A stretch of 64,000 nucleotides of DNA from Octopus sinensis (GCF_006345805.1 NC_042997.1:207452001-207516000); one strand, 5' to 3'; counted from the stretch's first letter, positions 33,239-58,277 are shown. Notes: generated by a model not told the origin, from the sequence alone. Program-made: numbers and translations.

Positions 33239-33339
33239 TTACTTTAAGCAATAATTACTTCTAATGTAAAAAAAGATTGAAAATGTCAAAATGAGATAAC
33301 GATTCAGAAAATATGAAATTCAATAATTTTAATGTAATA

Positions 33340-34534: not shown

Positions 34535-34800
34535 TCAATTAGAGAATGTAATTAAATAATGAGGATATGCCTGAGAGTCACGAACAATAACATAATTCCT
34601 GGGTCTTTGAATATTATCAACAGTGGAATTGTAAGGATCCTGTAAAACATTCAATCCATGACGTTTTTGTATCACTTTGCCCACAAGAACACTGCATTTG
34701 TATATTCTCTTTATGTTGTTATGGTCAGGAGTAGAATATTTATCACTTGTAGAATTCTGGATGTCTGTGGTAAAGGAAACACCTTCATCAAATGCAGTGG
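34535..34800 (-). CDS. PARP14/15-like ADP-ribosyltransferase, terminal coding exon
   Basis: Acceptor ttttttttgtctattcttag|CC (phase 1, matching the upstream donor). Translates (A)TAFDEGVSFTTDIQNSTSDKYSTPD...IYKCSVLVG...YNSTVDNIQRPRNYVIVRDSQAYPHYLITFSN*, the typical QAYPEYLITF PARP C-terminus. Confidence 0.92.
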
Positions 34801-35009
34801 CTAAGAATAGACAAAAAAAAAAGATATATATATATACATATATATATTTATCATGCTGGGACTACTTGTTAGTACCATTCATTATTAATTGATAATTTTT
34901 TACTGTTATGGGTTTTTTTTCTTTAAGCCACTGATATTATTGTAAACAAAGATATCCTCATATATATTTAAATAACTTTTATTCACTTCCACCACCTTTT
35001 TTTAAATTT

Positions 35010-35456
35010 CCTGCAGCAAAATCAAAATAGATGAACATCAATGGAATTTGTATCTTTGAGGTACCAGTGCCGGTGGCACACAAGAAAACCATCCGAACGT
35101 GGCCGTAGCCAGTACCGCATCAACTGGCCTCCGTGCTGTGGGCACGTAACAAACACCATCCGATCGTGGCTGTTCGCCAGCCTCATCTGGCACCTGTGTC
35201 GGTGGCACATAAAAAACACCATCCGAGCGTGGCCGTCTGCCAGCCTCGTCTGGCACCTGTGTCAGTGGCACATAAAATCACCCACTACACTCTCGGAGTG
35301 GTTGGCATTAGGAAGGGCATCCAGCTGTAGAAACACTGCCAGATCTGACTGGCCTGGTGCAGCCTTCGGGCTCCCCAGACCCCAGTTGAACCGTCCAACC
35401 CATGCTAGCATGGAAAGCGGACGTTAAATGATGATGATGATGATGATGATGATGAT
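35010..35456 (+). mobile_element. RTE 3' UTR fragment with (GAT)n
   Basis: Matches 19660-20028. Confidence 0.9.
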
Positions 35457-35754
35457 TCAAAACAGTCATTATACACATTAGTGAGATGAATAATCTCTTA
35501 CTCAAAATGTTACTCAAAATGAACTAAGAGTCTTTCTCAATATTCGAAATCATGCTGCTACAGGTATGTCTAGCTTTTTCAATTTTTAATTATTGTCATC
35601 ATTGGTGCGGGTTTCTAGTATCTATATTCATTTGTCCACTTTCACCTTTGTGTTTAAGTGACAATTTGTGGTTTGGTCATTTTGACTGCTATATTTAGCA
35701 TGCTGGGTACTACTTGTTAGGACCCTTAATTAATAACACACACACACACACACT

Positions 35755-36880
35755 CATCAGAACCACGCAAATAGCATAGGAGTGAACTATATGATTTCTT
35801 GGTTATCTGTGAATCGATTTTGATGAAACTTCTCCCAGATGCTATGGACATTGTTATGTTTCCGATATTCTGTGTACCGTCTTTTCCATTTTTATTTCAG
35901 ATTCTTCAGTTTTTGGGTGAACCATGCCAATAACTTTTGAATGAAAAGAGCCCATCTAGACATTTTTTTTTCCTGAAATCTGACGGGTAATGATACATAT
36001 TAAGCCTACATTGAGTATTTACTTAACAGAAAACCATAATAATATTATAACATTTATTGACATAATTAATTCTTTAGCCACATGAGTACCATTTTGACTG
36101 ATAATTTCGAAAAACTAATTAGTCAAAGATTCTGTCAATTTCTTAATAGTAGCAGGTTGGACAGCCTCTGCTGCAGCTTTGATGGCCGCCCATAAGACAT
36201 CTTTCAATGTAAGCTGGCATTCATTGGCAAAATCATCTTATTAAACGACAGACGAAAGATTTTCAAAAGGGTTGAGACCTGGAGATGCTAACAGTCACAT
36301 AATCAACCTTTCACCTTGTTTGCCGTAAAACCCTAGGAATGTTTGAGTGGTCCTAACAGGGTGGGAAGCAGCATTGTGATGCATGAATACAAGATTCCTT
36401 AGAATTGACACTGGTATATCATCTATTCAGGGATCCAAGACCTCCTTCAGTCACTTTAACCTCTTGAGGCACCCTGACTGGGCCAACATGTGTGCCCCCA
36501 GTGATACCAGCCCACAACATGATTCCTCCACCCTGTTGTTGATGCTCCTCTCCGAAATACGCCATTTGCCCAACCATCAGGTTTGTCAAGGGTCACCCTG
36601 GTTTTGTCAGTGAATAGAACACAACTCAAGTCTAATGTCATGCATTTTGGGGCCCATAGAAGCCTCAAACTCCTGTGATGGGACATCAAAGGAGGCAGTT
36701 TCAGGGGTTCTCACATGGAAGCCATGGTCCCAAGGATGCAATTTCTGGTAGCTTTCAGTACATGAGGAAGTCCGGAGGGAGTGAAAATGTCTATGCTTGT
36801 TTGTCCAGGTCTCCCGCATAACTTGCAGCCTATATTCCTTAAATCCCTAGCAGTCACTGTGTTGCAGGTCCCACAATCAG
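35755..36880 (-). mobile_element. Second Tc1-like copy, inverted; 35765-36788 is near-identical to 30969-31990
   Basis: Reverse-complement comparison by eye; identical short ORFs appear in the track (31066/36456, 31142/36383). Confidence 0.92.
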
Positions 36881-37017
36881 ATTCTTTTACTCCTTGGCAT
36901 TCATGTAGCTAAATAATTCATCATCATCATCATCGTCATCATTTAACGTCCATTGTCCATGCTGGCATGGGTTGGACAGTCTCACTGGAAGACTGCACCT
37001 GGCTCCAGTCTGATGTA

Positions 37018-37210
37018 TTATGTCAATAAATGTTATAATATTATTATGGTTTTCTGTTAAATATATACTCAATGTATGATTAATATGTATCATTACTCTT
37101 CATTTACTGGGGAAAAAATGTCTACATGGGCTATTTTCATTCACAAAAGCTATTACTATGGTTCACCAAAAATTGAAGAATCTGAAATAAAAAAAGAAAG
37201 GATGTTACAC
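37018..37210 (+). mobile_element. Third, diverged Tc1 3' fragment
   Basis: Similar to 31694-31885. Confidence 0.75.
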
Positions 37211-37212
37211 AA

Positions 37213-38540
37213 GAGAAGTTTCAAGTGTGGAAGCAAAGTCTAAAATCGAAGGGCCTTAGAGTCAATCTAGCAAAAACCAAAGTCCTAGTAAGTAGGAAGT
37301 CGGATAAGCCACAAATCACTTCAGATAGATGGCCCTGCTTGATATGTAGAAAAGGCATATCTAGAAACTCCATAAGCTATGGACACATAGGAGGTACAGC
37401 AATATCAAAGGAAGGCTAACTGGGAAGATAGTTTCTGTATGTGGTAAATGCTCAGGAGCAATAAACACTGAAAATGTGCATAGAACAGCTACCATCACAT
37501 TCCAGGGGGAAAAACTACAAGTAGCTAATAGCTTCAATTACCTAGGTGACCAAGTCAGTAGTGAGGGCTGTTGTTCTGAGCGTATAGTGGCTAGAATAAG
37601 AATAGTCTCAGCAAAGTTCAGAGAGCTCCTACCTCTGCTGGTGACAAAGGGTTTCTCACTCAGAGTGAAAGGTAGATTGAATGACGCATGTGTGAGAACA
37701 GCCATGGTACATGGCAGTGAAACATGGGCAATGACTGCTGAGGACATGCGTAAGCTCGCAAGAAATGAAGCCAGTATTCTCCGATGGATGTGTAATGTCA
37801 GTGTTCATACTCGACAGGGTGTAAGTACTTTGAGAGAAAAGTTGGACCTGAGAAGCATCAGATGTGGTGTGCAAGAGAGGGGACTGTACTGGTATGGTAA
37901 TGTGGTGTGAATGGATGAGAATAGCTGTGTGAAAAAGTGTCATACCCTAGTAGTAGAGGAAACCTGTGGAAGAGGTAGACCCAGGAAGACCTGGGATGAA
38001 GTAGTGAAATACAACCTTTGGATGGTGGGCCTCACCGAGACAATGACAAGTGATCGAAACCTTTGGAGACATGCTGTGCCTGAGGAGACTCAGCAGGCCA
38101 AGTGAAACTGTAACCGTGGCCTAAGCCAGTGGTGCATAACTAGCCCATTTAAGAGCACCCTTCAGTTGTTGGGCAATAAACTGCACTTGTGAAGATCTGT
38201 TGAGGCAAAGGAAATTGGTGTTCTGGCCGATGACAATACCACCTGATTGGCACCTGTGCTGGTGGCACATAAAAAAAAAACACCATACGAGTGTGGTCAA
38301 TGCCAGTGCCAGCTGACTGGTCCCATGCTGGTGGCACATAAAAAGCACCATTCGAGCATGGTGGTCGCCAGTGTTTCCTACTGAAGCCAGTACTGCCTGA
38401 CTGGCCGTCATGCCGGTGGCACATTAAAAGCACCCATTACACACTCAGAGTGGTTGCCTTTAGGAAGGGCATCCAGCTGTAGAACCGTCCAACCCATGCC
38501 AGCATGGAAAGTGAACGTTAAATGACGATGATGATGACGA
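37213..38540 (+). mobile_element. RTE 3' half with tail
   Basis: KGLRVNLAKTKVL, WPCLICRKG, YLGDQVS, ARNEASILRWMC, then 3' UTR and (GAT)n. Confidence 0.92.
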
Positions 38541-38556
38541 TAAACAAATTAGATAT

Positions 38557-38790
38557 CATCATCATCATCATCATCATCGTTTAACGTCTGTTTTCCGCGC
38601 TAGCACGGGTTGGACGGTTTGACCGGGGTCTGGGGAGCCAGGGGCTGCTCCAGGCTCCAGTCTGATCTGGCAGTGTTTCAACAGCTGGATGCCCTTCCTA
38701 ATGCCAACCACTTCGCAAGTGTAGTGGGTGCTTTTTACGTGTCACCTGCACAGGTGCCACAGGGGTCTGGCATCGGCCACGATCGATTGG
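38557..38790 (-). mobile_element. RTE 3' tail fragment
   Basis: (ATC)n plus reverse 3' UTR. Confidence 0.88.
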
Positions 38791-39065
38791 TGCTTATATA
38801 TATATATACATATATATATACATACATATACACATACATATATACATAAATACATATACATATATACACATACATATATACATATACATATATATATATA
38901 TATATACATATATACATATACATACACATATATACATACACACATATATACATACACACATATACATATACATATATACATATATATACATACATATATA
39001 TATATATATACACATAATAAACATACATATATACACATACATATATATATACATACATATACATA
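38790..39065. repeat. TA/CA compound microsatellite (similar tract at 40322-40535)
   Basis: Direct reading of the sequence. Confidence 0.95.
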
Positions 39066-39067
39066 TA

Positions 39068-40321
39068 CGAGGGGCGTTCAATAAGTAATGCCCCTGTCCC
39101 ACTCCCCATAGCAGTAGAGCAACGACACTTGGAACAGTTATTAGACTTTCTCTACATAGGAACCACCCAGAGTTATGCATTTCTCCCATCATTTGATACA
39201 GCTATGGAGACCGTTTTTGTAGAAGACCCCAGCTTCGTCCTCCAACCACGACGTGACTTCAGAAATCAAGGCTGTATCATCTGGGAAACGCTTTCCTTTC
39301 AAAATCAACTTCATGGCTGGGAAGAGGTGAAAATCAGAGGGTGCAAGGGAAGGAGTTCATAGCTGCACGCCTGTGCTTCTGATCTGGCGACACGCGAGTT
39401 GTGGACCGGAGCGTTGTCCTGCAGGAGGAGGATGCCTTTGCTGATCTTGCCCCGCCTCTTGATTTTGATAGCTTCTCTTAATTTCCTCAAAAGTGAAGCA
39501 TAATAGGCTCCTGTAATTGTGGTACCCTTTGCCAGGAAATCTGTCATCACTACTCCGTCCTGGTCCCAGAAGACTGTGAGCATAACCTTGTCAGCGGAGG
39601 GCTGCACCCTTGCCTTCACGGTGCTTTCACTGCATTGACTGGGCTTTGGTCTATGGATCATAGTGATGGACCCAGGTTTTATCCTGTGTGATCAGTCTTT
39701 TGAAAAATTTTGACTCATCTTCTTGGCACATCTCCAAATTCATCCTCGAGCACTCAACGCATTCTTGCTTCTGGAAAGGTGTGAGCAACCTGGAAATCCA
39801 TCTGGCAGACACCTTTTGCATATGCAAATGGTCATGAATGATAGTTTCCACAGACCCGGTACTAATCTTGACCTTATGGGCTATTTGGCGAATAGTTATG
39901 CGTTGACCTTCCAAAAAGGGCAGCTTCAACTTGACGGACAGACGTCTCATCAACGGCAGAAGGGGGCGACCAGATCTGGGAGCTGTTTCCACAGAGTTCC
40001 GACTATGTTTCAATTCACAATGCCAGCGTTTTACAAGGTCATATGATGGGGCATCATCACCATAAGTTACTTTCATTTCATCAAAAGTCTCCCGTGGTGT
40101 CCGTCCTTTCAAATACAAAAACCAGATCACTGCTCGACACTCAACAGGCTCCATTTCACACTTGACTCAGTTCAAACACCTGTAAATCAGAAACCACAAT
40201 TAGTTCAGAGCTGTAATTCGCCACTTAATCTATAGAGGTATAAGTAAGTGCACATGCAAAATTTCAGCTAGATCAAACAACTGCAAGTGGGTCAGGGGCA
40301 TTACTTATTGAACGCCCCTCG
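39068..40321 (-). mobile_element. Full-length mariner (irritans/Himar-like) with TIRs and frameshifted transposase
   Basis: TA|CGAGGGGCGTTCAATAAGTAATGCCCCTG...CAGGGGCATTACTTATTGAACGCCCCTCG|TA. Motifs MEPVECRAVI, WISRLLT, TQDKTWVHHYDP, MLTVFWD and QDNAPVH. Confidence 0.96.
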
Positions 40322-40404
40322 TATACACATACATATATACACATACATATATACATACATATATACATACATACATATATACATACATATATACATACAT
40401 ACAC

Positions 40405-40437
<33 letters not shown>

Positions 40438-40689
40438 CATATATACATACGTATAAGCTCTGTATGCAGTGGACCTACACATAAACACACACACATACAA
40501 ACATGCACCCCGTCCACACACACACACACACACTGTATATCCATAGTATGTAGGACTGTACAGCTGCTATAAATAGCAGCTGAATATGCTTCAAATCTCA
40601 CCATATTGGCTTGAAATATTTTAAGTACAGGCAAAATTGGGCTCAGCAATCCATAATAATGTTGATAGATTTAGTTCATCACAATATGC

Positions 40690-43020
40690 TGTTGTATGGA
40701 TGCAAGGAGCATCGGATGAGATGATCCTGCGTCATCAGGGCAGAGAAGATCTTAATGCAGGGAAGGATTAAATGTGGAAGGATTAAATGTGGAGAGCAGG
40801 ATGTATTGGAGGGGTAGCTGGTGGAGGGGGAGTATTAAGACTGGGAATGGTGAGAGGGGAAAAGAGGGTTCAGGGGGAGCGAGGGGTTAATAATGAGGTG
40901 GTAGTAAAAGTGGAGAGTAGGAGAATGAATAGGAGGGTAGAGTAGATAGCATTTGAATGATAGTCTGTTATGTGGGGTTTGTTAAGTTTTATGGATAATA
41001 GTTATAGAATTAGTGGGAGTTGAAATAGTGAGGAAAGGAATGGCAATTATTTGAGGGAAGTGTCTAGTTCAAAGATTACTAAGGTATGTAGAAAGGTATG
41101 AGAGAAGAGAGAAGTGGGTGATTGGCAGTCAAGATAGTAATGGTTAGTGGAAGGGGAGTACTGAGATATGCAGAGGTGAATGAAATTGGATAGAGCAGGT
41201 GAGTAGAGAGGGTGAGGAGTAGTATAAAGTGCTTTTGTTTGAAGAAGCGAATTAAGAGGAGAGGAGACCCCTTGTGAGGATGAGGAGGCTATGAGGGAAA
41301 CGGGATGTACTGGGTTGGAGGAATTTGGAAAGCTAACAATGAGAAAGAATAGTTTAATGGGAAGGGTGGTATTAGTTGAGGTAAGTTGCTAGGCTGACCT
41401 AGTCGTGCCTCAAGATTAATTTTGAGTAAGGATACTTAGAGCTATGGGATTGCATAAATTTAATGAAATGGACAAATGATGAGTAGAACCTGTGTTCACA
41501 AGACAGTATTACATCTGAGAATCTATTAAGTAAAGAGGGGTTGTGGTGGTGAAGCATGGTTAGCGGTTCTCTTAAGCATAATTTTACACATACCAATGTA
41601 TGTGTTGTATGGGGGAGCCTCATCTATGATGGACCAGGATAGGGTATAGGGAACATTTTGAGAATTGACGTTGTGTATAATAAGGTGCTAAGGAGGGTGA
41701 TAATTTGAAGTTGGATTGGAGAAAGTGTTCATGTGTACACGGTAGCAGCACTTTAAATCAACAATGCCACCAATATAGACCCTTGCTTGGTGGGAGCATG
41801 GTGTGATAATACAGCGCTTGAAGACTTCATATTTACACAGACAGAAACCCCCCAAGAGGGCATACTTGAGAAGTTCAACAATTTCAAGTTTTCCAACTTG
41901 TTCTGCAGTTGAAGTTTATTGTTATGGAGGTCAAACTATGGTGGTCCATTATTAGTGAGGGAGAACTTGAAGTGCAGTCTGTATCAGTATTGGATTTGGG
42001 GGAAAGGTATCACTGCTAGTATATGTGGTCACACAGTATTGTGGGAAGATATCGTGTTATTATTTAGTCGAGGGGGATACTGAGAGTTGTATTATTGCCA
42101 CTAGGTGGCTTAATTTGGGGTGCAGTGTGAAAAATTGCAGGTTACAAGAATTGACATTGTAGTTTGTGTTTGTTAGAGGAGGTGATTATGGATCCCAAAT
42201 TTGAGTAGGAGATTTTAACAGAGGATTTATAAAAAGATAAGTTAGTGAGAAGTTAGAGTTTAGGAGTTTAAAGAAAGTTTAGAGAGAGATTTAACTTGAA
42301 GAGAGAATGGTGATACAAACCATAACATCTCTCACTTCCCATACTTAAGATGTATAAAACACGTGATTGCACCGAGTAGATCTAGATAGGGAAGCTTACA
42401 GTTACTAGAGGTTTGAAGTGGTTAGTGGGGTTATTGAGTACGATGTGAAGGTTCTTTTTTTTTTTTTGAGAGTTAATGGATTAATGTAGAGTGGAAAAAA
42501 GATCTGAAAATTTGGGGTTTGTATTAGGAAAGAAATGTGCAATTTTGATTTTAAGTTTGGTATTAGAGATATAGGAGATATTTTCATAGAAGTTAGTTAT
42601 CTGGAGAGCCTGGTTATAACAAGGGGCATGACTGCTAAAATTTTCATTTGCAGATAAGTTGGAGATTCTGATAGAAATGCCTATTAAGAGTAAGTTTAGG
42701 GTGATTTGATAGGATGTTGATATATTGTAAAGATTGATTGAGTTTATGGAAAGGTTGATATAGATTTGTATCTAAGTTCAGAATGATGTCTAAGAAATTG
42801 ACTAGTTTAGAGTTACTTTTGAATGTAATACTCAGGTTATAGTTTTTAAAAAATTTGTGTAGGGTTTTCTTGGTGCATCCAACCAAGAAGGTTGAGATAA
42901 TCCAGTTGCTGTAAGGAGTGCATCATCCCTGTAGACCCCTCTGGAGAGGTTAGGGAAGTATTGTTTAATTTGGGAAAGAAGGAATTATTATATATATACA
43001 TATATTTCCCTGTTACACTC
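40690..43020 (-). mobile_element. Highly degenerate PLE of a different lineage (YRDD-type RT plus GIY-YIG) with purine-rich 3' region
   Basis: Motifs G.YRDDAL, FKNYNLSIT..NSKLVNFLD.ILNL, SNHP, VKISYS and CPLGGFC..VYIG...WSII...PY...CK. Confidence 0.75.
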
Positions 43021-43089
43021 AAACCTGTCATCATTTGATACAGGATAACCACCTCTAATGCCCTTCTGTTGTGGCCAGACACTTGCTTC

Positions 43090-43445
43090 TGTCTCTTTGT
43101 CTCCCTCTAACCTTTCATCCTCTGACACAAGTTCCCCACTAAAATGCTCTGCCCCTCTCATAATTCAATGTCTTGTGCCAGAGCTGGTGCCACATTAAAA
43201 GCATCCAGTCCATACTGTAAAGTGGTTGGTGTATGGAAGAGCATCCAGCTGAAAAACTCATGCCAAAACTAACTTCACCTGTGCTAGAGCCACATAAAAA
43301 GCACTGAGTCTACTCACTAACCTCTCATCTATCCCTAGTTTCTGCATTACCCACTAGATAAGGGAGGGGGGGGACCCTGTTAGAGGCTTTCTCCAAGTCA
43401 GGTAAAGAAGTTTATCTTTGGCTAGGTATTTCTCCTGCAGCTGTC
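43090..43445. mobile_element. RTE tail (+) and RT fragment (-, FLARQLQEKYLAKDK)
   Basis: Motif similarity to other RTE copies in the window. Confidence 0.7.
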
Positions 43446-43679
43446 TTGCCAGGAATATAGCATCATATGAATGTATGTATGTATGTATGTATGTATGTAT
43501 GTATGTATGCATGCATGCATGCACGCATGCATGCACGCATGCATGCACACATAAAGGCAGGCAGGAAGATAGATAGACAGACACACACACATATAGTTAT
43601 CATATTATACCCGGATGGGAATTTATTCCCTCTTCACAACATTTCCATGGGCCTGAAACGACTATAGGTCCAGGCAGTA

Positions 43680-44215
43680 GAGGGTTGTCTTTTTCTTTTT
43701 ATTATTTTATGGGTTTCAAGTGTTTTTTTCGGTGTGGGTCTTGACTCAGTAGCAGGATGTTCTTGTATATAATTGTTTGAACTTCTGCATTTCTTGGATT
43801 GTGTGTTGAGAGATATGGGAGACTATTAAATGTACCGTGATTGTGTTTCAATTTTCATAAGTCTTGAGTAGTGATTGTCTTGGCCTGTTCTATTCCATTG
43901 TCAACTAATGATGCTGGGTAATGTCTTTCGAGAAGAATTACCTTCAAAGAATTTACTTTATGCCATAAGGTGTGAAGAGTGCCACAAAGATTACATAGGA
44001 CAAACAAGCCTTGCCTTCAGAGAATGGATGACAGTCCACCACCAACAACCGAGGGACCCTACCACAAGACATATACCACTTAGTGGTCACTTAGATCTCT
44101 GTGCACAAAACAAGTCCCCCAAATTCCTAGTTTTCCCACTATACCAATGCCCAGACAACACCACTGACCAAACACGAATAAATAGAGAAAATAAGCTTAT
44201 TCAAAAATAGACCAC
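43680..44215. mobile_element. PLE fragments in opposite orientations (linker on -, GIY-YIG on +)
   Basis: Minus strand LPYLSTHNPRN...THKII. Plus strand NLLYAIRCEECHKDYIGQT...GHLDLCAQ...FPLYQC. Confidence 0.82.
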
Positions 44216-45350
44216 AACTCAACATACTCTAACATACTGCCCCAAGTACACACCCACAATAAACACCCACACATACATATACACACATGCACAAACACAA
44301 TATCCCCACACCTGAGCACAAACCCACACACATCCCAAGAAAAAACACATACATATATCCACTTGCAATATGATTCTAGCAACCATAACCAACACTCACA
44401 CACATACGTAAACATGTACATGCACACACTTACACACACCACCCTGACAATTACAAATCACATTCACACAAACATATTCACACATACAGATACACACACA
44501 AACATGCAAATACAACAAAACCCACACAAACATGTATGCATATATGCACACACACACACACACACACACACTCAAAAGAAAGAAACACACTCATATACAC
44601 ATAATAAAATCCCAACAATCACAACAAGCATGCACACACACAATGACACACCTCCCTGACAAATTCAAGACATATAGACACATCCACACGCATATACACA
44701 CACGTATACACACACTGCACTAACAATACAAACAAAACAAATCACTCACAAAAGCAGCACACACACATACACCCGGAAACTATATAAACCATACCCACAT
44801 ATACACACGCACAAACGCATACTCAGTACTAACATGCACAGAACGTACACGCAGACACATACACACCACCCGGATAAACATAACACACATGGACACACAG
44901 AACCCGATAAATACAACACACTCACACACAGACACCCACACATACCCCCACACACATACATATGCACCCTCACATATACATACGGTGGCTCGCATACACA
45001 CACACAAGGAAAATTAACACAAGACAAACATACTCAGACAGAGACACACTCACGTACACACATAACATCCCTACCAAGACAAAACACACAAACATACACA
45101 CGCACACACAGATGCACATACATACACACGTGAAGAAACACATACACACAGCACCCAGACAAATACTAATTACACACATACACAAACATGCACACATATA
45201 CAGACATGCACACATATACACACACCATCCTACCAAATATAAAAAACACACACAGACCCATATACACACGCCACAATATACTCTGGGACCAATCAAAAAT
45301 GGCCCACACACACATAGAGATGTGCACAGTGAAACACACACTCACACCAT
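44215..45350. repeat. CA-rich low-complexity tract after the PLE stop codon
   Basis: Direct reading; source of many spurious H/T/C/V ORFs. Confidence 0.9.
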
Positions 45351-45569
45351 TCTGACCTCTGAGACCAGTCCTGAAAACCCCTGAACCATGACAGACTAGC
45401 CCAGAAACAAAAAATCTTAATTCCACATTGCTCAGAAAAATGTCAAATAGACAGCTCAGTTATTCCTCTCCGAATTTTTGTAAACTCTTAAATATACCTC
45501 CTTTTGTGTATATATATATACTACCGAACAAACATGATTTTTATTGAACTACTCTCTTTTCTTTTTTTT

Positions 45570-45928
45570 CTCTTTTACTTGTTTCAGTCATTTTGACTGC
45601 GGCCATGCTGGGGCACCGCCTTTTAGTACTTATTCTATCGGTCTATTTTGCCGAACCGCCAAGTAACGGGGACATAAGCACACCAGCATCGGTTGTCAAG
45701 CAATGCTAGGGGGACAAACACAAACACACACACACATACATACATATATATATATACATATATACGACAGGCTTCTTTTCAGTTTCCGTCTACCAAATCC
45801 ACTCACAAGGCATTGGTTGGCCCGGGGCTATAGCAGAAGACACTTGCCCAAGGTGCCATGCAGTGGGACTGAACCCGGCACCATGTGGTTGGTTAGCAAG
45901 CTACTTACCACACAGCCACTCCTGCGCC
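45570..45928 (-). mobile_element. tRNA-derived CORE-type SINE (octopus OR/OK-like), complete
   Basis: Head GGCGCAGGAGTGGCTGTGTGGTAAG..GGGTTCAGTCCC, CTTGGGCAAGTGTCTT core, internal microsatellite, and tail GACTGAAACAAGTAAAAGA. Confidence 0.88.
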
Positions 45929-46164
45929 TACTAATACCTTTTGTTGAATACTTTCTTAAATACTTTCTTGTTAACTGTTTTAAAAATTTTCTTATTATTA
46001 TCAAAGAATGTATAACTGTATTTTAATACTTTTGTGACAACCACTACTTAACACAACAAAGCTTTTACATTTTACTTTTGACAATCTTTTTCTTAAGAAA
46101 AGTGAAACCGGTCAAGTGAATAAACATCTTTTAAAATTGCATTTTCAAACCTTGTTTCATACAT

Positions 46165-46216
<52 letters not shown>

Positions 46217-46219
46217 GTA

Positions 46220-46740
46220 AAGTTTGAAAACACTACTATATAAGATAAATTTTAATTTTCTTAGAAATTTTACATGTTTCGGTTCTTCTTGAAAAAACAA
46301 ACCTTATCAAAAATATTTTTAAAAGTTAAGTGTAATAAAAAAGTTCATAATTGTTTCTTACTGGTCTCAACAGAATCCACGTGGTGGTTTTTTGTGGGTA
46401 GTAAGCATAATAGCTATCTTATGTGTTCGAATAAAATAAGGAAATGACCAGTGGCCGAAATGGCAGTAGCAGCAGTGAAATGGCAGTAACTGCTGCTACT
46501 GCCATTTCGGCCACTGGTCATTTCCTTATTTTATTCAAACACATAAGATAGCTATTATGCTTACTACCCACAAAAAACCACCACGTGGATTCTGTTGAGA
46601 CCAGTAAGAAACAATTATGAACTTTTTTATTACACTTTTTAAAATATTTTTGATAAGGTTCATTTTTTCAAGAAGATCCGAAACATGTAAAATTTCTAAG
46701 AAAATTAAAATTTATCTTATATAGTGGTGTTTTCAAACTT
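46220..46740. repeat. ~260-bp-arm inverted repeat (fold-back PLE pLTR) with a 12-nt spacer
   Basis: 46220-46476 is approximately the reverse complement of 46489-46740. Confidence 0.92.
46267..46314 (-). ncRNA. Hammerhead ribozyme motif, U3-A8 core (mirror at ~46646-46693, +)
   Basis: AUUU UUGAUAA GGUU-loop-AACC GAAA CAUG UA AAAU. Confidence 0.55.
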
Positions 46741-46781
46741 CTTTTTTATAAATATATACCCACTCATATACAACCTACACT

Positions 46782-46809
<28 letters not shown>

Positions 46810-46816
<7 letters not shown>

Positions 46817-46995
46817 TTATTTGTTTCAGTCATTTGACTGCAGCCATGATGGAGCACCAGCTTTTAGATGAACAAATCGGTCCCAAGACTTATTCTTTGT
46901 AAGCCGAATGCTTATTTTATTAGAATCTTTTGCTGAACTGTTAAGTTACAGAGATGTAAACACACCAACATCGGTTGTCAAGTGTGGGGCGGGAC
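46810..46995 (-). mobile_element. SINE tail fragment
   Basis: Similar to 45570-45720. Confidence 0.8.
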
Positions 46996-47029
46996 AAACA
47001 CAGACACAAAAACATACACACACACACAT

Positions 47030-48120
47030 CAGATTCCATTACATGCCAGGGAGAAAAGCTAGAAGTAGTTAATAGCTTCTATTACCTAGGCAGTCAAGTC
47101 AGTAATGGAGGTAGATACTCTGAGAGTGTAGTAGCTAGAATAAGAATAGTCTTGACAAAGTTGAGGGAGCTCCTACCTCTGCTGAAAACTAAAGGCCTCT
47201 TGCTCAGGATGAACAGTAGACTGTATGATGTACGTGTGCAAACTGCCATGCTACACAGCAGTAAAACATGGGCCATAACTGCAGAGGACATGCGTAGGCT
47301 TGAAAGAAATGAAGCTAGTATGATCCGCTGGATGTGTAACATCAGTGTGCATACACGACAGAGTGTAAGCACCCTGAGAGAAACGGACATAAGAAGCATC
47401 AAATGTGGTGAGCAAGAGAGATGACTGCGCTGGTATGGCCATGGGTTAAGTATGGATGAGGACAGCTGTGTGAGAAAGTGCCACTCTCTAATTGTAGACG
47501 GAAGCTATGGAAGAGGTAGACCCAGAAAGACATGGAATGAGATGGTGAAACAGTACCCTCAAACACTGGGCCTCACAGAGGCAATGACAGGAGACTGAGA
47601 CCTTTGGAGATATGTTGTGCAATTGAGAAGACCTGGCAACTAAAGTGAAATCGTATCCATGGCCGATGCCAGTGTTGCATGTCTGACCCCGTTGAAAGTA
47701 CATCTGATGCGTCAGGCGAGATGATATGCTAGAGAAGGTCTGTTGAGTCAAGTAAAATCAAAATCGTAGCTGTGGCCAGTGCCCCCTCACTGGCCCCCAT
47801 GCTGGTGGCACGTAAAAAGCACTGTCCATACATGGTCAATGCCAGGTCTGCCTGACTGGTTCCTGTGCTGGTGGCACGTAAATAGCACCATCTGACCATA
47901 GTCAATGCCAGTGTCCTGTTACTGGCTCCCCTGCCGGTGGCACGTGAAAAGCACCCACTACACTTTCAGAGTGGTTGGCATTAGGAAGGGCATCCAGCTG
48001 TAGAAACACTGCCATATCAGATTGGAGCCTGGTGCAGTCACTGGGTTTACCAGACCTCAGTCAAACCATCCAACTCATGTCAGCATAGAAAACGGATGTT
48101 AAACGATGATAATGATGATG
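47030..48120 (+). mobile_element. RTE 3' half with tail
   Basis: GEKLEVVNSFYYLGSQVS, ERNEASMIRWMC, then 3' UTR and (GAT)n. Confidence 0.9.
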
Positions 48121-48134
48121 ATATAAAGATATAT

Positions 48135-48305
48135 ATATATATGTATGATGGGATTCTTCCAGTTTCTGTCTACCAGATCCACTAACAAGGCTTTGGTGGG
48201 CCTGAGACTGTAATAGGAGACACTTGCCCAAGGTGCCATGCAGTTGGACTGAACCTGGAACCTTGTGGTTGGTAAGCAAGCTATTTACCACACAGCCACT
48301 CCTGC
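48135..48305 (-). mobile_element. SINE head plus core
   Basis: Similar to 45770-45928. Confidence 0.85.
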
Positions 48306-50709
48306 TTTATAAATCCACTGGTAATAAAGCCACCCACTTAATGTAGCCAAAATGGGTTGTGACAGAATTTTTACACATAAAATCTCTTGTTTAATAAATC
48401 CAATTCTCACTGCTTCTTCTTTAAGTGTCAACAAGTGACAGGGATCAAATGAAGTTTTTTTTTTTTGGTCTTAAATACTGACAAGTAGGCTCCAACAGCC
48501 ACAGACAGCCAGCCAGCTGCTACACTCCATCATCCAAAAATAGATCAATAAATAAGTAGTAGCTGGCAGCAGCTACTGGAACCTACCACACAATCCTGTC
48601 ATTCAAGCAAAAAAGTAGAATCTGGGACATGAAATTTTTTTCCCCACAAGAGTTCCAGACCCCAGTTATGAACTCATTTGCATAAAGCTAATCAGAGCTC
48701 AACTATCAAACTAGTGTCCTCCTATTCATGAAAATACTCTGGTTGAGTTCAGTGGAAAACGTGCGTTATAGTGAAATCTAACTGTTCTAAATGGGTTAAT
48801 AGAGGTGACAAAAGTGAAATTTAGTGCATAAAGTGAATGGAGAGCTGTTCACCGATGATGCCTGCAAGTGTTGCCAATTTGTATAATTTACTAGAAAATG
48901 TAAATGAGTGTAGTTTCCTAATTTTTTGACTGATTTTCTACATTCCTAATTTAAAATGTTGGTGTTGATTTAGGAATATCGTAATCAATATGGCATTCTC
49001 TCGTATTGCACCCTCTTTGCATACATCAATGGCTACATGTAATATCACTAATCTCAGTCTGAGCATAGGTACCTAATGTTAGCTCCAGATAGAGATGGTG
49101 CTCGATTGATCTATGACGATGGAATGTGGTGCTTATGTGAGACTTATGCTGTACTCGCAGTGTGGCATACACCATTCTATCCCTGACCTGCTGTACTGTA
49201 GTAGTACACAGTATGTGGATTTTTAAGTTGAGCTCCAATTGGTTGTATGCAAATGAGTTCATTATTGAGGCCCAAAACTCTTGTGGGAAGAAAATTTTGC
49301 CTCTGGAACACCTCTTGTCAAAATTAAATGCCCTTCTCACTGGATGATGAAATGTACCACATGATAGCTGGCTGGTTGTGGCTGTTGGAACCTACCTGTC
49401 AGTATTTAAGGGTAAAAGAACATGTCATTTGCACAGAGAGGCAGACAGACACACAAGTTGTTCAAAATATTCAAAATGAAAAGAGAGAGACAGGACAAAT
49501 CTGTGGCAGAAAAGATTCAATTGTTAAAACGTTAGAAGGTTTTGGGAAAACACCTCAGCAAGGAGCAGCACAGAGTTTGGGAATTTCAAGAAGTCTGCTC
49601 CATAATTTGTTGTGAGACGCTATAAGATGGCAAAGGACTGTGTGGCCGTGATGCAACAGGAATGGAGACAAAGAAAACTTGCTTTTAATCAGAGAGGCTG
49701 GTTCACCAAGATGCTTCAAAAAGGTCAAAACGCTTCCAATACAGAACAACTTTTTTAACCAATGCTTGGATGACAGAAAAAATCTATGGAAAATGGCTCA
49801 GATCTTGGGATTGACATTTGCAGGAACCTGGAAGACAAGCGGTGGTCTTACTTGATAATTGCTCTTCTCATGTAGTCATTGATGATCTCAAGAATACCAC
49901 TTTAAAATTTCTTCCTCCTAACACAACGTCAATGCTGCAGCCCCATGACATGGGAATAATCAAGACCTTGAATGCCTACTTCAGACGTGAGAAGATCATT
50001 GCTGTGACGTTTTTGCCCAAGAAGTTGCAAAACAGATCACCATTTTGGATGCCATATACATGTTAAGCATAGAATGGAAGAAGGTCTCTAGCCAGACAAT
50101 CAAACATTGTTGGACTAAAGCTGGTTTTGTTTTGAATTAAACAAAGCCATAGATTTTAACGAAGATTTGATTCTGCCTTCACCACCAACTGGATTGACCA
50201 AAAGGCATTTTGAGAACTGATTGTCCGTAAATAAGAAGGCTGTTGTTCCTCCAGAGATCATCACCGAAGAAGAAAAACTAGGCAAGATCATTCATGACAT
50301 TCGGCAATCTGAGAAGGGAACTGAAGGAGAGTATGGTGATTCCAATGTTGATGTTGATGAAAGCATTCCAGAGCCTCCAACACCAGCTGAAATGAGACAC
50401 ACTATCTCGAATAGAAAATGGCCTTCAAAGTTTTGATTTCAGTGATATGAATCTTTTTAGAACTCTTAAAGAAAATATCAATGCAGAGTTGCAAACAAAG
50501 TGAACACCAAAGCAAACAACACTCTACAAATTTTTCATTCAATGACATTGTTTATAATGTTTTTATTTGTGTATTCACCTATGTTTGTATTTTAATAAAT
50601 ACACATGTTTAATCAATCAACGAATTTTGTTCCCTCAGTTAATAAATCCCTTGCTTCATAAATCCAAAATAGGCAGTCCCAAGACGGATTTATAAAGCAG
50701 GGTCTACTG
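48301..50709 (+). mobile_element. Degenerate pogo/Tigger DNA transposon
   Basis: Right TIR GGATTTATAAAGCAGGGTCTACTG|TA; left TIR remnant CCTGCTTTATAAATCC at 48301. DDE_1 motif LLDNCSSH...FLPPNTTSMLQP.DMGIIK. Confidence 0.85.
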
Positions 50710-50774
50710 TATTTTTATGCTTTTGGGTTTTATTATTGAATTCCCAGATGTTTTAGATATGTATTTATGTTCAT

Positions 50775-51460
50775 CACCATCATAATCATCATCGTTTAAT
50801 GTCTGTTTTCCATGCTGGCATGGGTTTGACGGTTTGACTGGAGAATGGCAAGCCAGGAGGCTGCACCAGGCTCCCATCTGATCTGGTAATGTTTCTACAG
50901 CTGGATGCCCTTCCTAATGCCAACCACTCCGAGAGTGTAGTGGGTGCTTTCTACATGCCACTAGCATGGGAGCCAGTCAGGCAGCACTGGCAGCGGCCAT
51001 GTTTGTATGGTGCTTTTTATGTATCACCAGCACAGGATCCAGTCAGGGTGGGGGCTGGCATCAACCACATTCAGATGTGCTCTTTATATGCCATTGGCAA
51101 AGGGAGCCAGTCAGGTGGCACTGGCATTGTTCCACACATGAATGGTGTTTATTGCTTGCTGGTGATGAGACACTGGTATCAACCACACCTACAATTTCCC
51201 TTTTGATTTTATTTGATTCAATAGGTCTTCTCAAGTGTGGCATGCTGGCTGTCAATTCAAAGGTACTTTTTAAATGGACTGATGTAAGCTACAGCTGTGA
51301 TCTCAATTTACTTGCCAGGTCTTCTCAATCACAGCATATCTCTAAAGGTCTCGGTCTTTAGTCATTGCCTCTGTGAAGCCCAATGTTCGAAGGTTGTGCT
51401 TCACCACTTCATCCCATGTCTTCCTGGGTCTCCTCTTCTGCAGGCTCCTTCTACTGTTAG
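50775..51460 (-). mobile_element. RTE 3' end
   Basis: Reverse 3' UTR and ORF end (RPRKTWDEVVKH). Confidence 0.88.
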
Positions 51461-51615
51461 GGAGTGACACACGGGAGTTTTATAAAGTTGTTTGACCAAC
51501 TGTTTATTATATTCTTTTGAATTTATTTTCTTTGTCTCAATTTTACCTGAGCATTTCTACTTGCAGCCCTATATTTTTTTCAGTTTCTATTAAAAAGGTG
51601 AAATTATAAAAGTTA

Positions 51616-51664
<49 letters not shown>

Positions 51665-51666
<2 letters not shown>

Positions 51667-51975
51667 GGAGTGGCTACGTGGTGCATTGTGAGTGGATTTG
51701 GTAGACGGAAACTGAAAGAAGTCTGTCGTATATATGTATATATATATATATATACATGTGTGTGTGTGTGTTTGTGTGACTGTGTTTGTCACCCCAACAT
51801 TGCTTGACAACCAATGCTGGTGTGTTTACGTCCCCATAACTTAACGGTTCGGCAAAAGAGACCAATAGAATAAGTACTAGGCTTACAAAGAATAAGTCCT
51901 GGGATCGATTTGCTCGACTAAAGGCGGTGCTCCAGCATGGCCACAAACAAATAACTGAAACAAGTAAAAGAGTAC
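51665..51975 (+). mobile_element. Internally deleted CORE-type SINE
   Basis: Head GGAGTGGCTACGTGG joined directly to GTGAGTGGATTTGGTAGACGG, then the full tail. Confidence 0.85.
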
Positions 51976-51989
51976 AGAGAGAGAGAGAG

Positions 51990-52625
51990 TATCATCATCA
52001 TCATCATCATTTAGCGTCCGTTTTCCATGCTAGCATGGGTTGGACGGTTCAACTGGGGTCTGTGAAGCTGGAAGGCTTCATCAGGCCCAGTCAGATCTGG
52101 CAGTGTTTCTACGGCTGGATGCCCTTCCTAACGCCAACCACTCCGGGAGTGTAGTGGGTGCTTTTTACGTGCTACCCACACAGGTGCCAGACAGAGCCGG
52201 CAAACGGCCACGAACAGATGGTGCTTTTACGTGTCACTGGCACGGGGGCCAGGCGAGGCTGGCAACGGACACGAATGGATGGTGCTTTTACGTGCCACCA
52301 ATACGGGGGCCAGACAGAGCTGGCAAACGGCCACGAAACGGATGGTGCTTTTACGTGTCACCGGCACGGGGGCCAGGCGAGGCTGGCAACGAACACGAAC
52401 GGATGGTGCTTTTACGTGCCACCGACATGGGGGCCAGACAGGGCTGGCAAACGGCCACAAATGGATGGTGCTTTTACGTGTCACCTGCACAGGGGCCCTG
52501 ATGTTGATCGACCTCAATTTGGTTCTGCTTTCTGATATATGTATTGATTTGGTTTGATTTTGATTTTGACTGTTCTCGCTGGTCTTGCCGGGTTTTCTCA
52601 CGCACAGCATACTTCCAAAGGTCTC

Positions 52626-52627
<2 letters not shown>
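51990..52627 (-). mobile_element. RTE 3' end with an expanded ~62-bp tandem repeat
   Basis: Six GTGCTTTT anchors at ~52158, 52221, 52282, 52345, 52406 and 52468. Confidence 0.9.
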
Positions 52628-52678
<51 letters not shown>

Positions 52679-52729
52679 ATAATAAATCTCTGAATGAGGT
52701 ATAAACAGTAACTGCACGACAATGTGAGG

Positions 52730-52761
<32 letters not shown>

Positions 52762-53879
52762 TATATTACAAGTAAAATATATAAACAAAACAGCAGAAGT
52801 GAAAGTCCTAAAAATGTGCAAAGAGGGAGCATAGCATCAGGTATACATACATTATATGCACATTGAGTGAGTGGAACAGGTAAGATGCAGGCTGTGCATG
52901 TTTTTAGCAAACTGATTGTCTGATGTAATACCTACTCAACAATGGATGCTCAACTTCTGGCTGAGATTACCAAAATTAGATGGAAGTTACATTGTCATTT
53001 GGAATATCCAAATTAACTCATCACAGATGTAAGCTGGTCTGAACCAGAAAAGCCAGTAATACAGAATAAAAATAGAAAGGGTAAGAATGGAAAAGATGGG
53101 GTCAAATATGTGGGAGTGGGAGTTGTATAGAGTTGATGAGAATGAAGATGGCTGAAGAAAGAGAAGAGACAAATGAGCAAATAGTTCATGTTGTTAAGGG
53201 GAAAAACTAGTAAAATGAACATCCGTTGTTGAGTGACTATTACGTCAGGCAATCAGTTTGCTAAGAAGCATATCCAGCTAGCAATTAACCTGTTCCCCTC
53301 CCACAATGAAGATTTTTATTTGCTTTTGTAGCAATTCTGGTTACTAACTGTGAGCTATATAGAAACTATCAGTTTATTGAATTTCTTCATAACTTCAATA
53401 TAGGGAAACAGAGTCAAACCTTTGATGCCAATAAATTATTATTTTTCCTCATCGTAACAACCTCCACTTTTTGTTATCTATAGCTGCCATGAACTACCTG
53501 AAGCTTACAAACTTCCTACACTCAGATCCCCGGTCCTTTTGTGTATTTATATACATATATAGGCACGGGAGTAGCTGTGTGGTAAATTAATGGAGCTTGG
53601 TTAGGAAGTGATATCACACCCACCATATAGCCCTGTCCTTTCATCATCAGATTACCATTTATTTCAAAGTTTTTAAAATTCTTTGAATGGTAAAAGTTTC
53701 AATAATGAAAAGCAGGGGCAAATTACGCCAATCTAATCTACAAAAAAATAAAATATTTTGCATTTTATACAGAGTATTCAGAATAACCTTCATAGTTTTT
53801 TTTTTAATTAGATGCATATGTTGCCATAAAAGGAAAATGTTACTATTGATCTAGTTTATTCAAGGTAGGCAGTGCCTAG

Positions 53880-54560
53880 CGAGGCAGCATATCCTTGAAA
53901 GCCTACACAGCAATCAAGTCCAGTAGTGACTTGAAATATTCAAACGGGGTTAATTCTCCTAATTATCTACCCAGCAATGTCAGCAGAAACTTCCAGAATG
54001 AGTTCCATGTCAGTTGACAGATGTGTGTCATTGAAACTCTGCAAGCATTTAATAGTTCCAAACACTTTATCAGAAAAGATCTATTAAAAGCCTGTCCCCT
54101 GCCAATATTTGCCACTGAACATGTTTGGGTGGCATTTTGTGGAACACCACTCGTCCACTCACCCCATATCCATATTCAGCAAACACATCCAAATCTAATT
54201 CCAAAAGATGATAAAAGAGTCAGTGAGAGAGGGTCGTTTGAGATATCTAAATGGAGTTACCTCTGTGATGGTACCACTGCTAGTTTATCAGATTTCTGTA
54301 CAGTTATTAAATGTCCCTTAACCAATTTCTAGGCCGTAGCAGACATTGAATATTTCAATGAGAGTTAACAACACTGGATTGATTATCTCAGTATATCTAT
54401 AATTGATAAACTCAGAATGGTGATTGCTAGGCCTGGTGTTCGCTTGTTGATATTTCTGTCCAGTCTTGCAGACTCTCCACTATACCCAGTCCTTCTTCCC
54501 CATAACATTACCCCTCTGGAATTCCACCCTTTCTCTTATCTTTCCTGCCCTATTTTCATT
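53880..54560 (+). mobile_element. Old CR1/L2-group LINE 3' remnant
   Basis: SSDLKYSN.V and terminal SFFPITLPLWNS, resembling the SFFPRT..WN.L motif. Confidence 0.6.
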
Positions 54561-54859
54561 TACAAAGGTTCAAGAGGAACATTGATGGATGGGGACAGAC
54601 CCTTCCTCCCAATCCAAATAAAAGTGTTGGTTCCACAATAATAAGATACACCTGGTTTACTCTAGAGCAGAAGATGTTAGGAAGGGGACCTGGCAGTAGA
54701 AACGATGCCAAACATGGAATGTGTGAGCAACATGACATCCTCTCTGTGTGAGAAAGGATTCTAAACAGCAATCAATGTGGAGAGTGACTGTCCAGCTCAG
54801 GACAATAGGAAGGGTGGGTAGAGGACACTACTATTGCCACTTTGAGAATATGTACTTAC

Positions 54860-55037
54860 CATTTTTACCACAAGAGCTATGGTTGAAACCATATTTATTT
54901 ATTCTCTCAACACATTCTGCAGTAGTACCATGCCAAAGGCCATCAACTTCAATTTTAACCTTAGGATTTTCTGCCTCATATTGTTTTTTCAATGCTTTGT
55001 ATCTCTGGTATAATGTTTTATTTTGAATTCTCTCAAT
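54860..55037 (-). CDS. PARP14/15-like, catalytic-domain exon (178 bp, phase 0 to 1)
   Basis: ttttctacag|IERIQNKTLYQRYKALKKQYEAENPKVKIEVDGLWHGTTAECVERINKYGFNHSSCGKN-G|gtaagt. Confidence 0.95.
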
Positions 55038-55425
55038 CTGTAGAAAAGGAAAATACATTTATGAAAAAACAATCAGTTCACTTCTTTGACAAGGAAATAA
55101 CGTTTGTGGTGAAAAACCCCAACCCTATCTGCTTTTTTTTTTCTTTTTTATTTGATACCAATTTTGATTCGGCTGTAAATTTTGGTAAGGCATAATAGTT
55201 TAGCTGCAAAATGGTGTTGCATTTACAATTCAATGCAAGAAGTTAAAGCAGAGGTATTTTTGTTGAGCAAAGATTTCTTGTGAATATCCAAAAACACATA
55301 GAACCATCCCAAAATAGGTTCATACAATGAGATTTAAGTCTTTTATACAAACAAAATGTCTCTTAACATTTTGTTTTAACAATAAACCATCAAATATTGT
55401 TTATAACAGAAGTAAAAATACAAAC

Positions 55426-55559
55426 TTTGATTATACGATAGGAAGGCAAATTCCGACAGAAAGTGGCCTGGATGTCGTCATATTCTGGTCCCTTTGTGAC
55501 TTTAACAATTTTAATTAATCCCTTGTCATTCATTGGTGACCATGTAACAGGGACCGATT
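55426..55559 (-). CDS. PARP14/15-like exon (134 bp, phase 1 to 0) preceding the catalytic exon
   Basis: gaactctag|..SVPVTWSPMNDKGLIKIVKVTKGPEYDDIQATFCRNLPSYRIIK|gtttgt. Matches the P..W.PM...EY..V...F...I.K motif and joins in frame to IERIQN. Confidence 0.88.
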
Positions 55560-55783
55560 CTAGAGTTCAAACAGAAATCAAATATTTCAGAAGAAAATTA
55601 AAATTATGAACCCTTTTTATGTTGAAAGTTTAGAAAAACCCCCAGGAGTATTTAGATAAATTTTTTGGGTTTTGAAAGGAAATACTGAATTACTAAACAA
55701 GCACTGTAGTTTTGTAGTAGTACTAGTAGTAGTGGTAGTGATGGAAGTGTTAGTGGGTGTGGTGATAAAACAAAGCAGACATT

Positions 55784-56682
55784 AGGCGCAGGAGTGGCTA
55801 TGTGGTAAGTAGCTTGCTAACCAACCACATGGTTCCGGGTTCAGTCCCACTGTGTAGCATCTTGGGCAAGTGTCTTCTGCTAGAGCCCCGGGCCGACCAA
55901 TGCCTTGTGAGTGGATTTGGTAAACGGAAACTGAAAGAAGCCTGTCATATATATGTATATATATATATTATATTAAATTAGAAATAAAACCACTATTAGG
56001 CAAATCAAACAGTGAAAAACATAAGCCAATACATAAAATTAATTTAAAAATATAAAAGTTAAACATAAAAAAATTATTAAAATAATTTAAACTTATAAAT
56101 TTTAAATATATATATACAAATATATATATGTATGTATATTTTTATATTTATATATTATTTTGTTTACTAATTTATTTATTTATTTATTTATTTTATTTAT
56201 TAATTTTTATTTATTTATGTATATATATTTTTTTTATATAAATATCAAAAGTATTAAAAGTTTAATAAAAGATAAAGAGTAAAACACTACGATCATTTCA
56301 TGGCTGTACCAATTCGAATAACAATAATTTAAATTCAGTTAATAATTCGAGTTATGGTTACAGTCAATCTTCAGGTTAATTGAAATATTTTAAAAATAAT
56401 CAGAAATATTTAAACAATATTTTTAAGATATAAATAATATAATAATTTTACTTATACTAAACTCTATTATCAAACTAGAAACTTAAAACTTAATAATTGT
56501 GATTATATCAAAATCGATTATAATGTTAAATATTAATTTTAATTTTTAAGGTAAGAAACCCACCGATAATCTAATGTCAGTAATAGTCTATATCTAATTA
56601 CATATATATTTTTTTTTAAAAATGACTATTATATATAAAAAAATTATCAATGGATATATATAAATGTATATATATAAAAATG

Positions 56683-56779
<97 letters not shown>

Positions 56780-57010: not shown

Positions 57011-57129
57011 AGAGTATTAAAGCACAATACAGTCCTTGCACCTACATCAAACCATCCAACCTATGCTGGCATGGAAAACAGATGTTACAAGATTATGATG
57101 ATGATGATGTTGATGATATTATATATATA

Positions 57130-58275: not shown

Positions 58276-58277
58276 AG

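Follow-up and report, generated by a model that had tools for sequence, protein, structure and literature searches.

A PARP14/15-like catalytic cassette with an H-S-N triad in Octopus sinensis: a candidate inactive copy in a multi-copy family

The 64-kb stretch of Octopus sinensis DNA analyzed here (the window; positions are counted from its first letter) carries on its minus strand, at positions 34535-55559, a three-exon catalytic cassette resembling that of PARP14 and PARP15, in which the catalytic triad reads His-Ser-Asn (H-S-N). In human proteins, the triads are H-Y-L in PARP14 and PARP15, H-Y-I in PARP10, Q-Y-T in PARP9, and Y-Y-V in PARP13, also called ZAP (PMC9189837); H-S-N is without a described counterpart in that table. 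The PARP domain of ZAP is inactive and is still needed for antiviral function (PMC9189837, PMC8568172). The original prediction, made from the sequence alone, had proposed that the cassette (hereafter, the window copy) encodes an inactive, possibly immune-related PARP paralogue or is in early pseudogenization. Our searches of the literature on octopus PARP14-like genes returned nothing beyond a proteomics mention.

Exons, domain, and motifs of the window copy

The three exons lie exactly where they had been predicted and join in frame through GT-AG splice sites, giving a single open frame of 191 codons, or 183 when counted from the ATG at 55533 (Table 1). The frame of exon 1 is open from its acceptor (SVPVTWSP) into this ATG (55533-55531), as in the paralogues, and the same ATG serves as the start codon in short paralogue models. 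The donor and acceptor contexts are base for base those of nine annotated octopus paralogues. No stop codon, frameshift, or broken splice site was found in the three exons, and in this respect the window copy does not qualify as a pseudogene. Searches with tblastn returned one of each exon only, with no second copy of any cassette exon in the window. A canonical alternative exon 3 within the 20-kb intron 2 was also sought by tblastn, full-length octopus PARP14-like proteins being among the queries, and none was found. The minisatellite that begins just past the stop codon is likely the 3' untranslated region; the first poly(A) signals beyond the stop are at 33333 and 33238, and a related minisatellite array also follows the stop codon of the O. 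sinensis paralogue P0008.

The product matches the Pfam PARP family (PF00644) with an E-value of 3.9e-15 and 56.3 bits, against a curated cut-off of 26.7. Its best matches among solved structures in the PDB are the catalytic domains of PARP15 and PARP14, which align over the whole domain with E-values of about 1e-34 to 1e-31; PARP10, PARP12, and then ZAP follow in rank, the last being a weak match (E 4e-10). The window copy is thus a member of the PARP catalytic domain family (PF00644, ARTD fold), with a match far beyond chance, and belongs to the PARP14/15-like subfamily, both by its closest structures and by an exon structure and introns common to octopus PARP14-like loci. The motifs HGT, FN.S..GKN, YS.PD, and QAYP.YLITF are common to human PARP14/15 and the window product.

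The departures from the canonical motifs, each read from its codon, bear out what had been claimed for them. The triad His is present in WHGT (CAT, 54932-54930). The GxGxYFA motif reads FDEGVSFT: the first Gly is replaced by Asp (GAT, 34789-34787) and the triad Tyr by Ser (TCC, 34777-34775). In exon 2, NRSYC reads NHSSC, with Tyr replaced by Ser (TCT, 54875-54873), and the third triad position, preceding YVI, is Asn in RNYVIV (AAT, 34597-34595). Human PARP14/15, by comparison, have YGKGTYFA and a Leu at the third position (PMC9189837). Measured against active H-Y-Phi mono-ADP-ribosyltransferases, in which Phi is a hydrophobic residue, the window copy has the His and lacks both the triad Tyr and the hydrophobic third residue. 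The family codon at the triad Tyr is TAT, and because TCC is two bases away from it, a single base error cannot explain the Ser. Two-nucleotide replacements are found in three codons of the window copy in total (TAT to TCC, CCA to AAA, and GGA to AAA). Adenosine-to-inosine RNA editing was considered as a rescue and rejected, as it can make neither a Tyr codon from TCC nor an Ile codon from AAT. From alignment to PARP15 and the PARP14 numbering, we take the Tyr of DKYS to be the residue that stacks on nicotinamide and the Ser of QNS to be one that contacts it; both are retained, and the Tyr-to-Asn change in QNS thus leaves the stacking Tyr in place. An AlphaFold2 model built on an alignment of 11 sequences had a mean predicted local distance difference test (pLDDT) score of 36, too low for use.

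Table 1. Features of the PARP14/15-like cassette in the window
Feature	Positions	Strand	Remarks
Exon 1	55559-55426	-	AG before, GTTTGT after; internal exon of the catalytic cassette
Intron 1	55425-55038	-	99% identity to the O. sinensis P0008 locus; zero private substitutions (0/385)
Exon 2	55037-54860	-	Acceptor ...CTACAG, donor GTAAGT; holds WHGT and NHSSC
Intron 2, conserved start (~770 bp)	54859-54089	-	93-97% identity to paralogues
Intron 2, remainder (~19 kb)	54088-34801	-	Nested transposons and low-complexity DNA
Exon 3	34800-34535	-	Acceptor ...TTCTTAG, stop TGA 34537-34535; holds FDEGVSFT, QNS, DKYS, RNYVIV
Minisatellite (~1.2 kb)	33328-34525	-	24/49/90-bp periods; begins 10 bp past the stop codon

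The octopus family and its mosaic structure

The window copy belongs to a family with at least 14 copies in Octopus. Copies were sampled from the annotated genes of three Octopus species (O. sinensis, O. vulgaris, and O. bimaculoides), which gave nine paralogous loci and later a tenth (L009). Within each of these species, all family loci are on one large chromosome-scale record; those of O. sinensis lie within 205.6-211.1 Mb of theirs. In a collection of 5.8 billion proteins, including the annotated proteomes of the three species, the closest proteins to the window product are 68-73% identical and are annotated as 'PARP14/15-like' in the same three species; no protein above 73% identity was found there. 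The nine paralogous loci share the three-exon cassette, with an intron 2 of 2-16 kb as compared with 20 kb in the window copy. For example, P0008 (named 'PARP15-like') and P0011 of O. sinensis, P0006 of O. vulgaris, and P0158 of O. bimaculoides have the same cassette and splice contexts at 68-73% protein identity, and are without the Asp, Ser, and Asn of the window copy. Long RRM-macro-PARP gene models end in some of the cassettes. In the models of P0001, P0005, P0006, and P0007 (loci L004-L007), the exons placed ahead of this cassette are short, N-terminal, and wholly unrelated, and may be captured exons or annotation artefacts.

The replaced residues are otherwise deeply conserved. All 13 other Octopus copies keep H-Y-[I/V], and the proteins of the nine loci, four more from Octopus, two from Argonauta, and one from a gastropod keep the His, GxGVYF, and a third residue drawn from [I/V/F]. 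An exhaustive HMMER search of 1.84 billion representative proteins provided 165 aligned domains of the nearest relatives; of these, 163 have the triad Tyr, all 165 the first Gly of GxG, and 162 the His. Asn at the third position occurs in none of the 165, where M, I, L, V, and T are found. The combination of Ser for the triad Tyr, Asp for the invariant Gly, and Asn as the third triad residue is thus confined to the window copy among the 14 Octopus copies and the 165 domains, and no orthologue carrying these states was found in the protein collection or by the HMMER searches. On the strength of this conservation and of the stated role of the His and Tyr in orienting nicotinamide adenine dinucleotide (NAD+) (PMC9189837), the PARP domain of the window copy is very probably catalytically inactive.

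Four of the 165 related domains have triads other than H-Y-x, namely H-H-I, Q-Y-T, S-S-T, and Y-Y-V (in P0160 of Argonauta hians, P0038, P0088, and P0144); dead PARP domains therefore recur in the clade. P0038, P0088, and P0144 are proteins with two PARP-domain matches each.

RRM, macro, and WWE exons were sought in the whole window by tblastn with six full-length octopus PARP14-like proteins, which found only the three catalytic exons, and the N-terminal extensions of the paralogues likewise found no upstream exon in 55560-64000. The suggestion to look for macro or WWE exons beyond 55559 was followed over the 8.4 kb that the window spans upstream of the cassette. In O. bimaculoides, the exon preceding the cassette is 12.6 kb away, and since this distance exceeds 8.4 kb, such exons are not expected within the window. 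As the frame of exon 1 is open to its acceptor, upstream exons probably exist, or existed, outside the window.

Different segments of the window copy have different histories. A 1.7-kb unit (55785-54089) aligns to every paralogue at 86-93%. Compared with P0008 of O. sinensis, identity is 87% in exon 1, 99% in intron 1, 92% in exon 2, and 93-97% in the first 760 bp of intron 2; the introns are 96-99% identical to the P0008 and P0006 loci. Exon 3, by contrast, is only 79-83% identical to any copy, the other copies being 86-92% identical to one another in this exon (97% in one O. vulgaris pair), and its flanks align only to P0008, at about 75%, via the common minisatellite. Substitutions private to the window copy are absent from the introns (0 of 1071 sites in intron 1 plus the first 760 bp of intron 2) and number 8 of 137 sites in the 5' flank, 8 of 134 in exon 1 (concentrated in its first ~100 nt), 4 of 178 in exon 2, and 17 of 249 in exon 3. 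The trees of the segments conflict: the introns and exon 2 group the window copy with P0008- and P0006-type copies, while exon 1, the 5' flank, and exon 3 put it on a long isolated branch. With Argonauta and Gigantopelta as outgroups, the window copy falls inside the Octopus clade on the longest terminal branch. Its exon 2 type is common to P0008 of O. sinensis, the L004b copy of O. vulgaris, and P0158 of O. bimaculoides.

We attribute this mosaic to recurrent non-allelic gene conversion or recombination among members of the cluster, in which the introns of the window copy were recently homogenized or acted as the donor. The stronger conservation of introns than of exons was considered as proof of positive selection on the window copy and set aside, patchy gene conversion being simpler. 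Pooled over 36 copy pairs, divergence is equal in introns (0.087), synonymous sites (0.088), and non-synonymous sites (0.100); the 5' flank of the window copy is as diverged as its exon 1, and the segment trees conflict. For these reasons, we do not claim an exon-specific excess driven by selection. Rather than an isolated odd gene, the locus is one among the many cassettes of a cluster that gene conversion has shaped.

Several observations concern the cluster as a whole. In the window and loci L001-L009, the unit from exon 1 to the first 770 bp of intron 2 has 86-99% identity from one paralogue or species to another, with sharp common ends, and in several copy pairs the introns are far more alike than the exons (for example, 2% versus 9% non-synonymous divergence). 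This pattern looks like concerted evolution combined with exon diversification. Upstream of the window copy, 61879-63999 and 59798-59998 match the sequence that precedes another paralogue, P0007 of O. vulgaris, at 94-97% identity. A 26-bp tandem array (63180-63999; 31.5 copies, 93% matches) reaches the end of the window and, together with the adjoining 1.3 kb, is 94% identical to L007 13602-15721, upstream of P0007. Relative to L007, the window has a 1.9-kb insertion at 59999-61878.

Selection, use of exon 3, and competing readings

Comparing non-synonymous with synonymous rates (dN/dS, or omega) against octopus paralogues had been suggested as a check. Within the family, pairwise dN/dS is 0.6-3.9 and mostly above 1, and against the family consensus most copies have values of 1.2-2.9, branch estimates that take no account of gene conversion. 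The pooled non-synonymous excess in exon 3 has p = 0.005, which is nominal, as the comparisons are not independent. With the whole family at an omega of about 1 to 3, the test had little power: where the family background is about 1 or higher, dN/dS cannot separate a dead copy from a live one. The sequences suggest a fast-evolving family in which the catalytic core is kept, as would be expected of conflict-driven genes.

For the window copy itself, omega is 0.87 overall and 0.65 in exon 3, where 10 synonymous and 26 non-synonymous differences from the consensus do not depart from the neutral ratio of 3.8:1 (p = 0.2); in most other copies, non-synonymous differences are in excess. The private nucleotide changes are spread evenly over codon positions (9/8/11). 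Positions that are otherwise constrained are affected more often than in other copies: 11 of the 94 positions invariant in the other nine copies are changed, compared with 1-7 in those copies (pooled Fisher p = 3e-4), as are 8 of the 60 positions at which human PARP15, Gigantopelta, and the majority of octopus copies agree, compared with 2-4 in the others (p = 0.014).

Intron 2 raises the question of whether exon 3 is used. Beyond its conserved start, the intron contains a frameshifted mariner element (HTH_48 plus Transposase_1 by Pfam; 39311-40154, minus strand) and, on the plus strand, pogo/Tigger-like DDE_1 fragments at 49328-50066, including a pogo DDE_1 fragment at 49818-50066, also identified by Pfam. 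Open reading frames (ORFs) at 37476-38105 and 46975-47600 resemble the 3' end of a retroelement found elsewhere in the window (17194-19361); the part at 37476-37910 has no Pfam match, and its identity as a retroelement is by sequence similarity only. The annotated protein with the exon 2 most like that of the window copy is P0158 of O. bimaculoides (XP_052829884.1, 'PARP14', 1032 amino acids, with RRM plus Macro); the PKVKIEV patch is common to both, and protein identity over exon 2 is 83%, compared with 81% for P0008 and L004b. P0158 is annotated as ending via read-through into intron 2 (…KNGKYIFSKWQQ, then a stop), and no exon 3 was found in the 9 kb of sequence that follows its cassette. 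The same read-through ORF is present past exon 2 in the window (GKYIFSKWQ, then a stop at 54833-54831), with ATTAAA at 54053 and AATAAA at 53860 just beyond the conserved intron 2 block. These signals make it plausible that intron 2 is where transcripts of the window copy end, with exon 3 left stranded as a relic.

Read-through of this kind is not limited to P0158. The O. bimaculoides models P0158, P0019, P0009, and P0003 are all annotated with read-through into intron 2 (L009 102211-102244; L008), giving a PARP domain cut off after its His-bearing half, and P0003 also reads through into a duplicated partial exon 2 (L008 25127-25216).

Our preferred reading, to which we give somewhat better than even chances, is that the window copy is a catalytically dead duplicate that is probably drifting or has a relic exon 3. 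The three exons would then be the 3'-terminal catalytic cassette of one copy in a multi-copy, rapidly evolving PARP14-like family. Recent non-allelic gene conversion would have kept the segment that starts in the 3' end of exon 1 and extends ~770 bp into intron 2 near-identical to P0008-type copies, while the 5' flank, the larger part of exon 1, and the whole of exon 3 would have followed a long private branch, along which the Gly was replaced by Asp, the triad Tyr by Ser, and the hydrophobic third residue by Asn, together with other deeply conserved positions. Established knowledge of PARP structure and function suggests that a domain altered in this way should not hold or activate NAD+ as PARP14/15 do. 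The duplicate may thus have been released from selection for enzyme function and left to drift, with its exon 3 stranded 20 kb downstream by transposon insertions and perhaps no longer spliced in, and its frame may still be open only for lack of time. Of the inactive paralogue or early pseudogene first proposed, the unique Ser, Asp, and Asn and the excess of changes at conserved sites speak in favor; to this picture are added a multi-copy cluster around the locus and an exon 3 that may not be used.

Several points weigh against drift. All 183 codons are uninterrupted, the start is conserved, and the canonical splice sites match those of active paralogues exactly. With an indel-to-substitution ratio of 0.085 taken from the family introns, and a stop expected from 5.5% of random substitutions, the frame would survive all 28 private substitutions, were they neutral, with a probability of ~0.03, and the 46 differences from the consensus in exons 1 and 3 with one of ~0.003, which implies that much of the branch diverged under coding constraint; the relaxation of constraint, if any, is recent. 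Also kept are the His and the glycine of HG (His72 and Gly73), the Ser that contacts nicotinamide (Ser112), and the Tyr that stacks on it (Tyr117). Exon 2 stayed distinct while both flanking introns were homogenized, which could reflect selection on the window copy. Finally, the lack of an annotated protein for the window copy is weak evidence.

The open frame and intact splice sites on so long a private branch, with the low joint probability of their survival under neutrality, together with the distinct exon 2, are also the main arguments for the strongest rival, namely that the product is expressed and selected as a dead PARP-like module, a binding surface or decoy comparable to PARP13/ZAP and PARP9, probably as the C-terminus of a larger RRM-macro protein with its upstream exons outside the window. 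We regard this as a real though clearly less probable alternative. It is in keeping with the exon 3 omega, which is the lowest exon 3 value in the family, with the three codons bearing two-nucleotide replacements, with a family dN/dS of about 1 or more alongside conserved core motifs, as expected for genes in conflict, with the other degenerate triads in the related domains, and with the precedent of ZAP-L, whose function requires an inactive PARP domain (PMC8568172). However, no orthologue with the same states was found, the exon 3 omega is not significantly below 1, and the changes strike buried, deeply conserved positions rather than pocket residues alone; moreover, exon 3 is 20 kb off and is missing from the annotation of P0158, the O. 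bimaculoides relative closest in exon 2. The more specific proposal that a cluster with uniform introns and diversifying exons has yielded a selected dead module, acting as an NAD+-independent binder or decoy in cephalopod host-pathogen conflict, is more tentative still.

The likeness to ZAP (Y-Y-V) and PARP9 (Q-Y-T) is that of PARP-fold domains with a broken triad, and the differences are considerable. ZAP and PARP9 lost the His and keep the Tyr, whereas the window copy keeps the His and lost the Tyr, so that it is not of the PARP9/PARP13 type. Both of those genes are old and conserved, whereas the window copy is private, single, and without a known orthologue. If the selected-module reading were true, the window copy would represent a third, independently evolved type of inactive PARP, with the His kept and the Tyr lost.

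An active mono-ADP-ribosyltransferase with a non-canonical H-S-N triad, for which the retained His72, Gly73, Ser112, and Tyr117 would be enough for NAD+ binding, is improbable. The third position does vary in active mono-ADP-ribosyltransferases (I, L, and Y in human; PMC9189837) as it does among the relatives; nevertheless, the near-universal triad Tyr and the universal Gly have been replaced, the His and Tyr are described as orienting NAD+ (PMC9189837), and further deeply conserved positions are lost. Least probable of all is an artefact of base errors, or of a mis-assembly joining exons 1-2 and exon 3 of two copies, for although the region is repeat-rich, the family has many near-identical segments, and the nearest paralogue differs from one part of the locus to another, the 28 private substitutions include three double changes in single codons and are not isolated errors, the exon order, orientation, and post-stop minisatellite are collinear with the P0008 locus, and intron 2 of paralogues reaches 16 kb.

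The window copy alone matters little, being one degenerate copy in a large family when inactive PARP domains are already known. More significant is the Octopus family itself, with many cassettes per genome, dN/dS of about 1 or higher with the core kept, gene conversion, and different upstream exons. To judge from its sequences, it has the profile that conflict gives to families of innate immunity, and little is known of antiviral biology in this animal group. Should the H-S-N copy prove to be expressed and conserved, it would provide a natural experiment on the repurposing of a PARP domain after the loss of NAD+ binding.

Other elements in the window

An apparently intact Penelope-like retroelement lies at 22212-25876, with a 466-amino-acid ORF followed by a 765-amino-acid ORF containing reverse transcriptase (RT) and GIY-YIG domains; degraded relatives of it are present at 12691-15050. 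Elements of the long interspersed nuclear element (LINE) type with reverse-transcriptase ORFs occur at 4093-6889, which also has a zf-RVT domain, and at 17194-19361. By their ORF sequences, 3'-end-like pieces of the latter recur not only at the two positions within intron 2 (37476-38105 and 46975-47600) but also at 57730-58279 and 61671-62126. The GC skew is +0.35 to +0.58 in 8001-12000 and -0.47 in 44001-46000, and long low-complexity ORFs are found at 8391-10073 and 44200-45400. The skewed stretches at 8001-12000 and 44200-45400 are probably microsatellite-like repeats.

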